From positions 4,154,001 to 4,218,000 of the forward strand of contig OZ218952.1 of assembly GCA_965112735.1 (NCBI GenBank): DNA of 64,000 bases, written 5' to 3'. The notes under the pieces are model-generated. The model had not been told where the DNA came from and did not search any database. It saw nothing but the letters and a program-made list of their open reading frames with translations. Below are positions 5,498 to 11,400 of the stretch, piece by piece (positions within the stretch are counted from its first letter, which is position 1; every line of letters starts with the position of its first letter). The position numbers and the translations under genes are program-made. Source of the DNA: Phaeosaccion multiseriatum. Lineage: Eukaryota > Protista > Ochrophyta, other classes.

Positions 5498-8400
5498 ATG
5501 CCAAGGATGGGCCGATTTTCGCTGGGCATATCCCTACTGCTGCCGCTCGTGGTTGCGGAGGGCAGCAGCCGCGCTTTTACTGCAGCGGCCTACAAGAGGT
5601 TCAAGGAGTATCAATCCTTCGCCAAAAAGGAGAGCAGGCTGCTGGATTATCCCGGCCATACCTCCATTGCAGCAAACCAACCCCACGGGCATTTTAAGGC
5701 CTGCACCTCCCACAGCAAAGCGTCCTCCGCCGCCTCGAAGCTGCGACAGGACTTGGGCTCCGACGAAGGGAAAGTCAAGGTAGGAGGATGAAAGGTGAAT
5801 TTCCTGTCGATTCCCCAAACAATAATCTCTGCTTATGTGCCCTCCGCCTCCTCGAGGCAAATGCAACGAAAATCACTCCCCCTCCCTGCTGCCTGCTTTC
5901 CCTTGTTCGGTGGGCGCTCCTTCTTGTGGTCTTTCGCCGCTCGCTCGGTGGGATGCAATCAGGTGTCCGTGAGTGATCCTAATGCGGACTTGGCGTGCTT
6001 CACTGTCTTTGCCCCCTTAGAGTACGGCAGAGGATTAGTCGACCTGCCTCACATGATGGACCTGGACAGGTGTGTGTAGAAAGAACTGAGAGACGCATCT
6101 GGCTGGATGTCTGCCTGCCGTGAGCGGCCCTCCATTCTCTCCATCGTAACCTATGATCTCCTGCAAACCACTCACCCGCTTGAATTTCTCACTTTACCCC
6201 ACACTCCAATGACTCCATCGTACTGCGCCGCGGCTATTGCAGCGTCAAAGCCCTTCCCAAGCACCATAATCTCGGCCGGAAGCTCAGAAGACAATTGCTG
6301 ACTAGGTGAGTAAGAACCTGCGATTGGAATTTAGAACTGGGGTCGGAGCTCCTCTGTCGTTTGCCCGCCTGTCTTTCGCTCGCTCCTCGGCTCCCTTCGT
6401 CACGCTCTCCTCACATCTCCTCTCGCTCGCTTCCCCCTTCCCTCCTCTCTCTGTGTGGCAGCCCTTCTTCAGGGTGTGACTTGGACTTTCCCATGTGGTT
6501 AGGCGATGGGTATTGTGACGGAGGCGAGTACAACACAGAGGCGTGCAACTATGATGGAGGAGACTGCGTGCCTATGTGAGTACCTTCATACCCACGCTCA
6601 TTCATACCACCTAGTCTTGTCGGGGAATTGCAGCTTAGCTCGTGTTTGGAATGAATGGGGGGGGGTTGGCTTTGGAGGACCCTCCTTTTCACCGCCATGA
6701 AGGCAGGCGTACGTATGTGCCACACACGGCCAAGTGGAATGGCAGCTCCGAGAGGGGATGAGCGTGTATGAATTGCCAGACCTTGCTTTGCCCCGCCGGA
6801 TTGTCGCTTGCTCCTCGGCTCCCTTCGTCATGCTCTCCTCACATCTCCTCTCGCTCGCTTCCCCCTTCCCTCCTCTCTCTGTGTGATAGCCCTGATGGAT
6901 GTGAAGTGGACCTACCCATGTGGTTAGGCGATGGGTATTGTGACGGAGGCGAGTACAACACAGAGGCGTGCAACTGGGATGGAGGAGACTGCCTTGTGCC
7001 TAAGTGAGTACCTTCATACCCACGCTCATTCATACCCATCTAGTCTTGTCGGGGAATTGCAGTTTAGCTCGTGTTTGGAATGAATGGGGGGGGGTTGGCT
7101 TTGCAGGACCTCCTTTTCACCGCCATGAAGGCAGGCGTACGTATGTGCCACACACGGCCAAGTGGAATGGCAGCTCCGAGAGGGGATGAGTGTGTATGGA
7201 TTGCCAGACCTTGCTTTGCCCCGCCGGATTGTCGCTCGCTCCTCGGCTCCCTCCGTCACGCTCTCTTCACATCTCCTCCCGACCGCTTCCCCTTCCCCTC
7301 CTCCCTCTATATGATAGCCCGAATGGATGTGAAGTGGACGTACCCATGTGGTTAGGCGATGGGATATGCGACGACGACAAAGATGGTTACGGCACGGAGG
7401 TGTGCAACTGGGATGGAGGAGATTGCGTGGGCACGCATTTCGTACATGCATCAACTCTTTCTATGTGAGTACTCCCCCACCCCCTCCGAGCCGACTCCCC
7501 TAGGCTTAGGCTTAGGCTGGGCACACGCGACAGCACAGAGTGGAGAACCACTGTTGGAGACGTGTACATACATGGACGGTCCCGGATTGAGGGGCGCAGC
7601 GGTGAATCCAGTTTGGAGCGAGACTCCTCTGGACTGGGTTCCCACAGCCGACTATCGCTTGCCCCTTCCTCGCCCCGCTCTGTCACGCTCTCCTCACATC
7701 TCCTCCTCTCCGCTCCCTCCCGCCCGCCCGCCCTCCTGCCTGCTCTTCTCCCTCTGTGTGGAAGCCCTGAGAACTGCGTCGTGGAGCACCGCTTTTGGAT
7801 TGGCGACGGTTTCTGTGACGGCTTGGAATACGACACCGAGGAGTGCGGCTACGATGGAGGAGACTGCGTTTCTCTGCAAGTGTGAGTAGTTTTGTGTAAT
7901 GTCAAGCAGTGCAGTGTACGATTTGGAAGTCGAAGCGTCCGTTGCAAAGTAAAGTGTGCGTCCCTTCGTTTCCTCCCCTCGACTGCCACTCGCTTCTCTG
8001 TCCGGCCCTGCTACGTGCCTCCCTCCTCACCCCTCCTCCCGCTCCGCCGCTGTCGTTCCCTCCTGCACCGCGCCTGCCCCTTTCCCGCGTGCGTGCCGGC
8101 CTTTCAGTCACGACAATGAGGACACGCAAACCATCACCATAGACGTTGCCACGCAAATCATCATCATCCCTTCTCCATTCGAACCACAAGCAGAAATAAG
8201 TGAAGCTTTCCAGGAGCTGCTGCATGTGATAAGCGATCATGTGGCGTCGGCTCTCGGCGCTGTCAACCTCGGTTTCCAAGACTTTTCCATGGTCGAGATG
8301 GGCGACATTGACGGCGGGACGTCTTACATTGCGAACTTCTCCTTGGTCTTCGTGGTTCCCTTGGACGTAGACGCCGACCTAGCAGGAGCGACAATTATGA

Positions 8401-11400
8401 GCGACGTGGCGGACGTGTTTGAGATGATTTCTGACTCTTCTTCTTCTGATGATGATGATGATGATGATTTTGATGATGATGATTACCATATAGACTTTTC
8501 GATTGTGAGCGCCGTGACTCGTGGACATGAGACCATCGCCATCGACTACAAAGACATCTTCATCATTTCGGACATATGGGTGGATTCGCCGCGTCGGCTG
8601 GCGGAGGGAGACGCGCCCCCCGACTTCATCAGTGAGGATGTTCAGGAACTCTTGGATACGATAGCACAGGCGGTAGTGGACGCGTCCAACGCTATCGACT
8701 ACACCATCGAAGACTTCTCCATGGTCGAGATGGCCGACGCCAACAACCTCCCCGCCGCGACGTCTTACAGTCTGAGCTACACAATGGTCTTCGTTGTGCC
8801 CGGGGGCGTGACTGCCGACACGGCAGGGCTCCTCATCGGCACCACGGCCACGGTCCAGCAGTCCATCACGGATCAGATCGAAGACTTCGACATTACCGTC
8901 GTCAGCGCCACCCCCCGTGTGAGCAGCATCGCTTCCCCAACACAGGCACCTACCCCAGCGCCAACTCCGGTAAGCAATGGCCATATATATGTCTCTTCGT
9001 GCGACGAGTCGCACCGAATGCTTGTCTGCTTGCTTCTTCTTCTAACTTCGCCTCCTTTCATGTCTCCCCCCCATACCGCTGTTTTGTCCTCTTGCTCTGA
9101 AGGCCCCTACACCGGCTCCGACCCCCGCACCTACTCCCGCATATACCCCCGCACCGACCCCCGCACCGACCCCGGCACCGACCCCTGCACCTACCCCGGC
9201 GCCCACACCGGTAAGAGAGTTAATTCCATCTCGGAGACATGCACGTATGCATGTATATGTCCACAGGTTTAGCGTCTCAATGGTGCCTGTTCTCCATTCT
9301 GACTGCTCTCGTTCATGCCCGACCCGTTTGACTGTCGTACCCCAGGCACCAACGCCCGCCCCTGTCGAGGAGGACGTGCTCGATATCTGCTGCGGCGAGG
9401 TCTCTGCGGACAATCAGGCCTACTTGGACACCTTCGGCAAGGAGCTCTACTGCGAGCCCGCATGCCTCACCCAAGGCCTTGTGTAAGTGCTGTCGCTTCC
9501 GTGGTGTTGGTGTTGGGCTGCTGGGCGGTGCGGTGGACCGTTAGGGGGGCGGTGGGAGCGGTGTGGGTCAGGCACTTTCGCTGGGCTCGTGTGCTCTCAT
9601 CGGGACATGGAGAAAGACTTCAAGACCTCACCCTTCGCCTCTCCCTTCTCCTCTCCTCTCCTCTCCTCTCCTCTCTCCGTCCCTCTCTACATCGCCTCCT
9701 TGCTACCAGTCACTGCAACATGTTTGGCTTGGGCCAGGAGTGCAGGGCCTGCTACACCGCGGAAGGTGCCGCAGCGGCCCTTGCAGAGGGCACCTACCCC
9801 GTCGACGAGATCCACCTTTGCCCCGGCGAGGTACCCCTCCCCACACCTGCACCCACGTGCGAGCCCGACGCCTGTGTGGCTCTGTGCGAGGCGGCGGGTG
9901 TCCTAAAGCCCTGCGTGACCGACAGCTCGTGCCTCAGCGGAGGGATTGGTTGCAAGGCCGATGGCGTGACCGAGGAGTGCCGCTTCTGTGGAGAGTCCAT
10001 GCTGACGGACCACGACCTGACCATCCCCTGCTCTGTGGAGTGCGACACCACCCCTGCACCGACACCAATCGTAGAGGTGCGTCTTTCTCCCCTGTACTCT
10101 GTGGTAGTGGCAGCACGTCACACACACACACGTAGTGATGGTGGAAAACATGCTGCGGGTGTTGTGTATTGACTGCTCGCGTTCCCTATGCTCATGTCTG
10201 TACTGTCTCTCAGGTGCCCACAGCTCCCCCTTCTGAAGCACCAACAGCCCCACCCACAGCACCTCCGACGATGGTGCGTACACACAGAACGAGATAGGCG
10301 TGGTGCATGCACTGCTTCCTGACGCTCCTCCGTTAGCGTCTCAATGGTGCCTGTTCGCCATTCTGACTGCTCTCGTTCATGCCCGACCCGCTTGACTGTC
10401 GTACCCCAGGCACCAACGCCCGCCCCTGTCGAGGAGGACGTGCTCGATATCTGCTGCGGCGAGGTCTCTGCGGACAACCAGGCCTCCTTGGACACCTTCG
10501 GCAAGGAGCTCTACTGCGAGCCCGCATGCCTCGCCCAAGGCCTTGTGTAAGTGCTGTCGCTTCCGTGGTGTTGGTGTTGGGCTGCTGGGCGGTGCGGTGG
10601 ACCGTTAGGGGGGCGGTGGGAGCGGTGTGGGTCAGGCACTTTTGCTGGGCTCGTGTGCTCTCATCGGGACATGGAGAAAGACTTCAAGACCTCACCCTTC
10701 GCCTCTCCCTTCTCCTCTCCTCTCCTCTCCTCTCCTCTCCCCGTCCCTCTCTACATCGCCTCCTTGCTACCAGTCACTGCAACATGTTTGGCTTGGGCCA
10801 GGAGTGCAGGGCCTGCTACACCCCGGAAGGTGCCGCAGCGGCCCTTGCAGAGGGCACCTACCCCGTCGACGAGATCCACCTTTGCCCCGGCGAGGTACCC
10901 CTCCCCACACCTGCACCCACGTGCGAGCCCGACGCCTGTGTGGCTCTGTGCGAGGCGGCGGGTGTCCTAAAGCCCTGCGTGACCGACAGCTCGTGCCTCG
11001 AGGTCGGAGCCATTGGCTGCAACGCCGATGGTGTGACCCAGGAGTGCCGCTTCTGTGGAGAGTCCATGCTGAGGGACCACGACCTGACCATCCCCTGCTC
11101 TGTGGAATGCGACAGCACCCCTGCACCGACACCAATCGTAGAGGTGCGTCTTTCTCCCCTGTACTCTGTGGTAGCAGCACGTCGTAGTGATGGTGGAAGA
11201 TGTGCTGCGGGTGTTGTGTATTGACTGCTCGCGTTCTCTGTGCTCGTGTCTCTACTCTCTCAGGTGCCCACAGCTCCCCCTTCTGAAGCACCAACAGCTC
11301 CACCCACAGCACCTCCGACGATGGTGCGTACACACAGAACGAGATAGGCGTGGTGATGCACTGCTTCCTGACGCTCCTCCGCTTCTCTGAACTCTTTCTC

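Follow-up and report, generated by a model that had tools for sequence, protein, structure and literature searches.

A predicted acidic, mucin-like surface protein of Phaeosaccion multiseriatum combining four-cysteine LNR repeats with tandem SEA-like modules

A stretch of 64,000 nt from the ochrophyte alga Phaeosaccion multiseriatum (GenBank assembly GCA_965112735.1, contig OZ218952.1, positions 4,154,001 to 4,218,000), referred to below as the window, was analysed, and all coordinates given are those of the window. Its DNA is intron-rich and eukaryotic, with a GC content of ~55-65%. A gene located at 5498-14307 on the forward strand is predicted to encode a mucin-like glycoprotein of the cell surface, ~1600 aa long, of type I topology and extremely acidic. 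Its exons appear to be shuffled cassettes, and in the protein a Ca2+-binding head of LNR repeats would be followed by tandem SEA-like modules. A role in a protective, adhesive or recognition coat is considered the probable one for this protein. The Notch negative regulatory region (NRR) consists of three LNR repeats and a SEA-like heterodimerisation domain, and a sequence-only reading of the same DNA had taken the LNR repeats and acidic modules of the algal gene for a comparable unit. The building blocks that it described were recovered here, but the specific comparison with the Notch NRR was not supported.

Gene structure, LNR repeats and membrane anchor

Three-frame reading and enumeration of phase-compatible GT-AG junctions gave one gene of 20 exons, starting with an ATG at 5498 and ending with a stop codon at 14305-14307. 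All 19 introns are of the GT-AG type with compatible phases, and the single open frame predicts a product of 1594 aa with an isoelectric point of ~4, containing 220 Asp and Glu residues against 49 Lys and Arg, and 85 Cys residues. The exon joins were derived from splice signals and phases only. The features of the gene and of a tandem paralogue located upstream are listed below, with the basis of each assignment in parentheses.

1-4760 (+): tandem upstream paralogue with at least four acidic modules, its 5' end lying beyond the window (module alignment, blastn)
5498-5779 (+): exon 1, with the start codon, a signal peptide and then a non-repetitive N-terminal part that has no Pfam family (reading frames and gene model)
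5963-6069 (+): putative exon 2, a short linker ending in phase 2 (the only phase-compatible GT-AG junctions from exon 1 to the LNR1 exon)
6462-6575 (+): LNR1 exon, a four-Cys LNR of phase 2-2 (PF00066, 22.8 bits; alignment of the four LNRs)
6890-7003 (+): LNR2 exon (PF00066, 24.0 bits; part of a 428-bp tandem repeat of exon and intron)
7318-7464 (+): LNR3 exon, extended by 11 residues at the C-terminal end and carrying a DKDG insertion (PF00066, 16.0 bits, E 0.016)
7765-7881 (+): LNR4 exon, the most divergent LNR copy, within a region that is a single intron in the paralogue (PF00066, 19.9 bits; blastn)
8108-8969 (+): module exon of 862 bp, with both acidic SEA-like modules and the beginning of a Pro/Thr linker (open frame 8109-8969; splice junctions)
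8124-8525 (+): module M1, 134 aa, without the RRL insert (six-module alignment; low-confidence two-module model)
8526-8927 (+): module M2, 134 aa, a predicted ferredoxin-like or SEA-like alpha/beta sandwich
8592-8618 (+): RRLAEGDAP motif of M2, in the loop between beta1 and alpha1, a candidate endoproteolytic site (invariant in four of six module copies)
9103-9210 (+): Pro/Thr/Ala linker exon (frames, gene model)
9346-11323 (+): two near-identical three-exon Cys-rich units, each with a DICCGE...YCEPAC exon, a module exon and a Pro/Thr linker exon (frames, gene model)
11403-12218 (+): exon for the mucin-like stalk, preceded by a third Cys-rich module (frames, repeat finding, gene model)
12475-14307 (+): five 3' exons with further Cys-rich modules, Pro/Thr linkers, transmembrane helix, KRRAS tail and stop codon (gene model; colinear with the 3' half of the paralogue)

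Exon 2 is required because exon 1 is of phase 0 while the LNR exons are of phase 2. All four LNR exons have a GTGAGT donor and an AG acceptor and are of phase 2-2; any of them could therefore be skipped in frame, and isoforms with fewer LNRs are possible. The module exon starts in phase 2 with neither an ATG nor a signal peptide, and hence must be joined to upstream exons. The LNR4 exon splices to it at CAAGT/gtgagt ... tttcag/T, which places the two acidic modules directly after the LNRs, as had been claimed. The span considered in the sequence-only reading, 6462-8969, runs exactly from the start of the LNR1 exon to the end of the module exon. An additional 63-nt exon of phase 2-2 may be present between exon 2 and LNR1, at 6244-6296 (+). 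It would encode a strongly basic peptide, is flanked by a cag acceptor and a gtgagtaag donor, and keeps the frame whether included or skipped. Long CA, GT and CT dinucleotide microsatellites are found in several introns (12240-12283, 12877-12968 and 13857-13942), and the splice site at the predicted donor at 13858, where the last of these begins, is therefore ambiguous (45 compatible combinations).

PF00066 was the best Pfam family for the peptides encoded by all four LNR exons, with LNR1 and LNR2 scoring above the family cut-off of 21.2 bits and LNR3 and LNR4 below it. A profile of the four LNRs, searched against the whole PDB, matched only NRR chains of Notch1, Notch2 and Notch3, GNPTAB and one further entry, and the alignments span the DG.CD...C.WDGGDC core at profile positions 13-35. 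A canonical LNR has six Cys residues forming three disulfides, C1-C5, C2-C4 and C3-C6. Each of the four algal repeats has only four, in agreement with the earlier description. Tyr occupies the position of Notch Cys4 and Cys2 is missing, the single upstream Cys lying 12 residues before Cys3. The repeats are thus a four-Cys LNR variant that has probably lost the Cys2-Cys4 disulfide, and the bonds that remain would be C1-C5 and C3-C6. Ten residues are invariant across the four LNRs (G14, D15, G16, C18, D19, D31, G32, G33, D34 and C35), and the position of the Notch CN motif is occupied by Asn in three of them and by Gly in LNR3. As judged by the alignment, the Ca2+-ligand positions (D-G-x-C-D ... 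N ... D-G-x-D-C) are kept, and Ca2+ binding is predicted.

LNR1 to LNR3 together with their introns make up the 428-bp tandem repeat, with 92% matches, and are evidently the product of a recent tandem duplication that changed the number of LNRs very recently. LNR4 is older, with a synonymous divergence (dS) of up to 1.2. LNR proteins are already known from stramenopile algae, as 31 PF00066 proteins are present in Ectocarpus (PMC3874173), whose gametes express 16 Notch-domain genes, and Notch-domain proteins also occur in a pennate diatom (PMC3879662). In these proteins and in GNPTAB the LNR acts extracellularly to bind Ca2+ without any part in the Notch pathway, as it presumably does here, and the GNPTAB repeats open with a W.xDGYCD motif, as do the algal LNRs. 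The algal variant differs from them in lacking the Cys2-Cys4 pair and in its partner domains, the acidic SEA-like and Cys-rich modules, for which no description elsewhere is known.

The C-terminal part of the predicted protein agrees with the earlier account of Cys modules, a mucin-like stalk, a transmembrane helix and a 5-residue tail. The stalk is encoded by a 36-bp Pro/Thr/Ser repeat present in 14.6 copies at 11680-12205, and the transmembrane helix (~14221-14289) is followed by the tail KRRAS. In the gene model, M2 is ~1000 residues away from the helix, the intervening part consisting of Cys-rich modules and mucin stalk. A tail of 5 residues rules out a released intracellular domain and thus Notch-type nuclear signalling, as had been recognised. 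The three-exon Cys-rich unit at 9346-11323 (+) is duplicated almost exactly, with motifs that include DICCGE...YCEPAC and ...CRFCGES...CSVEC, and more diverged copies of the Cys-rich module are found at 11403-11600, at 12475-13250 and in the paralogue. No credible Pfam family was found for this module, and an Atlas search with it was blank; weak matches to zf-C2HC5 below the Pfam cut-off were judged to be due to chance.

Acidic modules, predicted fold and the RRLAEGDAP loop

The window includes six copies of the acidic module, M1 and M2 in the target gene and four in the upstream paralogue (65-493, 1011-1499, 1500-1931 and 2537-2917), and these six paralogous sequences make up the module alignment. 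Neither M1 nor M2 contains Cys; the former has 29 Asp and Glu residues against a single Lys or Arg, and the latter 23 against 4. The other copies are 37-54% identical to M2 in the six-module alignment. The modules evolve fast, with ratios of non-synonymous to synonymous substitution rates (dN/dS) of 0.44-0.95 at 39-56% identity, as expected for fast-evolving surface proteins. The most conserved block, DFSMVE...TSY..Y.MVF.VP (for example at 8715-8790), straddles the hairpin of strands beta2 and beta3. Thr-Ser-Tyr is invariant at the start of beta3, and a preceding Gly is found only in M1. SEA domains are classically cut at this hairpin; as the block has no Gly-Ser motif, autoproteolysis of the algal modules is not implied. 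A GAT/TGA trinucleotide run at 8447-8483 encodes a poly-Asp loop in M1.

Sequence searches did not connect the modules with any known family. None of the six had a Pfam match even at E≤10, and a PDB sequence search gave no SEA match, the sole entry at E≤10 being a designed coiled coil. A word-index protein search with the two-module exon, in which candidates were restricted to 158-502 aa, returned nothing. An exhaustive hidden Markov model search with the six-module profile against 1.84 billion representative proteins gave one match, P0001 (E 1.9e-4), a bacterial DUF11-like repeat surface protein, which aligns only on a strand of the TS.VSYEFTYTVP type and was rejected as spurious. As far as can be judged from sequence, the family appears to be lineage-restricted.

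An AlphaFold2 model of the module, computed from the six-sequence alignment, had a mean predicted local distance difference test score (pLDDT) of 81.2 and a predicted template modelling score (pTM) of 0.75. It consists of beta1 (residues 2-15), a low-confidence loop (16-32), alpha1 (33-54), beta2 (58-69), beta3 (78-91), alpha2 (97-117) and beta4 (121-133), and thus has the beta-alpha-beta-beta-alpha-beta order that the sequence-only reading had deduced from the hydrophobic pattern. A ferredoxin-like fold is predicted with confidence. A model of both modules (pLDDT 51) showed the same topology twice, and was unusable for the M1-M2 interface.

Foldseek returned only generic ferredoxin-like matches with low template modelling (TM) scores, of which the best, 0.48, was to the Gpr126 ectodomain; M20-peptidase dimerisation domains and PII-like proteins held the top ranks. 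A VIA-align structure search of 48,161 chains, independent of Foldseek, included the following entries, given with the three values listed for each.

Rank 1: zebrafish Gpr126 376-508, a SEA domain (PMC6954182); 9.3, 3.1, 105
Rank 2: TMPRSS6 83-210; 8.5, second value not recorded, 115
Rank 25: MUC16 SEA; 7.0, second value not recorded, 116

SEA domains occupied ranks 1 and 2 and were among the longest alignments. In this count the TMPRSS6 segment is presumed to be a SEA domain. In the ESM Atlas, a search by features gave scores of 0.87 or less, below the useful range, in which a SEA cluster at rank 8 (0.76) served as a lead only, and a search by structure gave heterogeneous ferredoxin-like rows. 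SEA is among the few ferredoxin-like domains that are typical of extracellular, mucin-linked, membrane-anchored proteins and occur in tandem arrays. Judged by the models, no other single match would be as good as SEA, and no other suits the setting of the modules as well, which is extracellular, tandem, mucin-adjacent and membrane-anchored.

This likeness is one of predicted fold, and homology to SEA is not implied. The claim of SEA-like modules is favoured by structure comparison, in which SEA domains gave the best and longest matches, but not by any Pfam or PDB sequence match. To our knowledge SEA is essentially a metazoan family, and no SEA domain from stramenopiles surfaced in the literature searched. 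SEA domains show low sequence conservation among themselves (PMC6586460). Like the SEA domains of MUC16, agrin, perlecan, Gpr126 and TMPRSS6, the algal modules are Cys-free, of about the same size (~110-130 aa in SEA), predicted to have the same order of elements, arranged in tandem, mixed with presumably O-glycosylated Pro/Thr/Ser segments and membrane-anchored. They differ from these domains in lacking a Pfam SEA match and the G/SVVV motif, and in that the candidate cleavage loop is the one between beta1 and alpha1.

In the target gene the RRL motif is found in M2 only, as previously noticed. It is part of the sequence RRLAEGDAP, which lies in an insert between beta1 and alpha1 that is present in four of the six copies and absent from M1 and from the copy at 2537-2917. 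RRLAEGDAP is invariant in all four copies with the insert, and its nine codons differ only synonymously among the three distinct ones. Given that only synonymous changes are seen amid fast-evolving modules, the motif appears to be constrained. It carries two of the four basic residues of M2, and its loop (model residues 16-32), with a pLDDT of ~57-72, is probably exposed in the predicted structure. The Arg pair is preceded by SP, VE or LL (SPRR, VERR, LLRR), and the absence of an Arg at P4 means that the site does not conform to the furin consensus.

In MUC1, which is cut by autoproteolysis, and in Notch2 and human GPR126, which are cut by furin, the cleavage site lies in the beta2-beta3 loop of the SEA fold (PMC6954182). 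The beta2-beta3 loops of the algal modules include neither basic residues nor a GSVVV-type motif, and the autoproteolysis motif G/S[VI]VV, which is found in many but not all SEA domains, is absent from them. Toxoplasma GRA16 and GRA21 have a TEXEL motif that matches the pentamer RRLAE in every letter and is cut after Leu by the Golgi protease ASP5, and also by plasmepsin V; ASP5 additionally cuts sites distant from the N-terminus (PMC4764566). The lineage of these TEXEL/PEXEL proteases (Toxoplasma ASP5, Plasmodium plasmepsin V) differs from that of the alga, and identity over 5 residues may be due to chance. An ASP5-like protease was not encountered here, no search having been aimed at one. 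A cut of the kexin type at the dibasic pair and an RRL-type cut after Leu would be equally good readings of the candidate site. Endoproteolytic processing of the modules at RRLAEGDAP is thus suggested tentatively and is, on balance, doubtful. The basic processing loop that had been proposed is retained here as a conserved and probably exposed loop, though one that lies between beta1 and alpha1 rather than beta2 and beta3 and has no furin-type P4 Arg.

Origin of the LNR-module adjacency and alternative explanations

The upstream paralogue has the same 3' architecture as the target, with a Cys-rich region, a transmembrane helix and a short tail (KRRAEP). Its 3' half (2975-4749) aligns by blastn with 12547-14301 of the target at 68% identity over 1.9 kb, and its modules with their flanking introns align at 70-80%. 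The module at 65-493 is nearly identical to that at 1500-1931, a sign of recent duplication within the gene. No LNR exon was found in the visible part of the paralogue (1-4760). The intron that precedes its double-module exon is undivided: positions 708-844 match 7564-7696 of the target, and 876-1001 match 7951-8077. Between these homologous blocks are 31 bp in the paralogue and 256 bp in the target, and the 256-bp segment is made up of the LNR4 exon flanked by an acceptor region and a GTGAGT donor region. The intron homology was established from local blastn pairs, as a global MAFFT alignment misplaced the first block and was rejected.

The interrupted homology indicates that an LNR exon with its own splice sites was either inserted in the target or deleted in the paralogue. 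LNR4 would therefore be a movable exon cassette, and shuffling of such cassettes seems to have created the LNR-module adjacency, in a family that has the acidic module as its basic repeat. Such an origin argues against a co-adapted two-domain clamp, without excluding one.

The arrangement nevertheless shares several features with the Notch NRR. The predicted product is a type I membrane protein in which the LNRs immediately precede a predicted alpha/beta sandwich of SEA-like form, with ~12 residues from the last LNR Cys to beta1; the LNR Ca2+-ligand positions (DG.CD, N, DGGDC) are kept; and a conserved dibasic motif is present in a probably exposed loop. In animals, SEA-like domains with a structured N-terminal neighbour often act as proteolytic switches (PMC6586460). 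An NRR-like unit of convergent or ancient origin would require that the LNR array clamps the SEA-like modules, that a convertase makes an S1-like cut at the basic loop, and that force exposes a second site, leading to shedding of the ectodomain. This is most improbable, as a basic loop is missing from M1, to which the LNRs are joined, and the RRL sequence of M2 is in the beta1-alpha1 loop and not in the beta2-beta3 loop that is cut in animal proteins (PMC6954182), and lacks a P4 Arg. Known SEA-type switches are juxtamembrane (PMC6586460), whereas the algal modules lie ~1000 residues from the membrane. The LNRs, four recently duplicated four-Cys repeats, have changed in number very recently, and the paralogue has tandem modules without an LNR at the homologous position. 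No Pfam matches to NOD or NODP were found for the modules, and the short tail leaves no intracellular domain to be released. Nor was the LNR and SEA-like pair found as a conserved unit, being absent at the homologous intron of the paralogue and without relatives outside the locus. The proposed Notch-NRR-like module therefore fails with respect to the position and type of the cut site, the LNR-neighbouring module, the location relative to the membrane and the conservation of the pair. Little chance is likewise given to a mechanical fuse produced by exon shuffling, in which a Ca2+-stabilised LNR head and modules pre-cut at RRL/AEGDAP would be held together only by strand beta1 until tension tears the protein apart and sheds it; if true, shedding that depends on force would have evolved outside animals, through a cut of new geometry.

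It is also conceivable, if rather unlikely, that the module has a common ferredoxin-like fold and is unrelated to SEA in both evolution and function. It would then be an acidic part of the cell covering that binds Ca2+ or acts as a spacer, and RRLAEGDAP would be a binding epitope instead of a cut site. The leading Foldseek ranks of M20-peptidase dimerisation domains and PII-like proteins, the lack of a SEA sequence signal in the Pfam and PDB searches, the extreme acidity of the domain and the heterogeneous Atlas fold matches are consistent with this, but the first two VIA-align ranks, with their long alignments, and the extracellular, mucin-linked, tandem and membrane-anchored context speak for SEA. 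An error in the gene model, such that the LNR exons and the acidic-module exon belong to separate transcripts or isoforms, is improbable. In that case the LNR cassettes would be skipped, or an LNR-only secreted product would end at an intron-retention stop, and each unspliced phase-2 GTGAGT donor does yield an in-frame TGA, while any subset of the four LNR exons is skippable in frame. No RNA run covering the locus was found, and the four public runs that cover it gave no splice joints, all four being genomic DNA contigs that read through the introns. However, the module exon needs an upstream phase-2 donor, for which the LNR exons are the nearest source, and the splice signals are canonical throughout the gene model.

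The explanation preferred here is that of a coat protein and not a signalling receptor. Its distal head would consist of four Ca2+-binding LNRs without the Cys2-Cys4 disulfide, followed by two tandem, Cys-free acidic modules with a SEA-like (ferredoxin-type) alpha/beta sandwich, and then by Cys-rich modules, O-glycosylated Pro/Thr stalks, the membrane anchor and the 5-residue tail. In function the protein would come closest to mucins and matrix proteins with tandem SEA domains, for example MUC16 and agrin, with the head binding partners in a Ca2+-dependent manner. The LNRs and modules would have become neighbours through gain or loss of LNR exon cassettes inside an intron, and not as a conserved two-domain switch of the NRR type. 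RRLAEGDAP may be a site for an endoprotease of the secretory pathway, cutting after the dibasic pair or after Leu. After such a cut, strand beta1 would belong to the N-terminal fragment and yet take part in the sheet of the C-terminal one. The two fragments would be joined non-covalently, in principle as in a cleaved SEA or GAIN domain, although the loop that is cut would be another one.

Several points weigh against this explanation. The splicing on which the gene model depends is deduced from the DNA. The structure model rests on an alignment of just six paralogous sequences from the window, the two-module model is poor, and the modules have no cleavage motif of any characterised SEA type. 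Furthermore, the LNR cassette event may have been a gain in the target or a loss in the paralogue, the 5' end of which lies outside the window and could hold LNRs. As it stands, the gene is best described as encoding a modular, acidic, mucin-like surface protein, and nothing found here demonstrates mechanosensing or a proteolytic switch.

Neighbouring genes and implications

Elsewhere in the window, two long paralogous open reading frames with pentatricopeptide repeats are found at 26749-29025 (+) and 54376-56328 (-), in opposite orientation and ~25 kb apart, with near-identical 35-aa repeats. Both have an SMR-like C-terminus, as assigned by reading of the sequence and not by a Pfam scan. An open reading frame at 45863-46693 (-) encodes a class I S-adenosylmethionine-dependent methyltransferase, whose closest match in the database, on a metagenome contig, has an identity of only 65%. 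This suggests that the genome of P. multiseriatum and its close relatives are absent from the large protein collections.

If the fold assignment holds, the acidic modules would represent a SEA-like family outside animals that has no detectable sequence relatives. With LNR repeats beside SEA-like modules, the gene pairs the two components from which the Notch switch of animals is assembled, and the locus may provide a natural example of intron-mediated exon shuffling leading to such a pair. RRLAEGDAP is a concrete candidate for a processing site in algal surface proteins.

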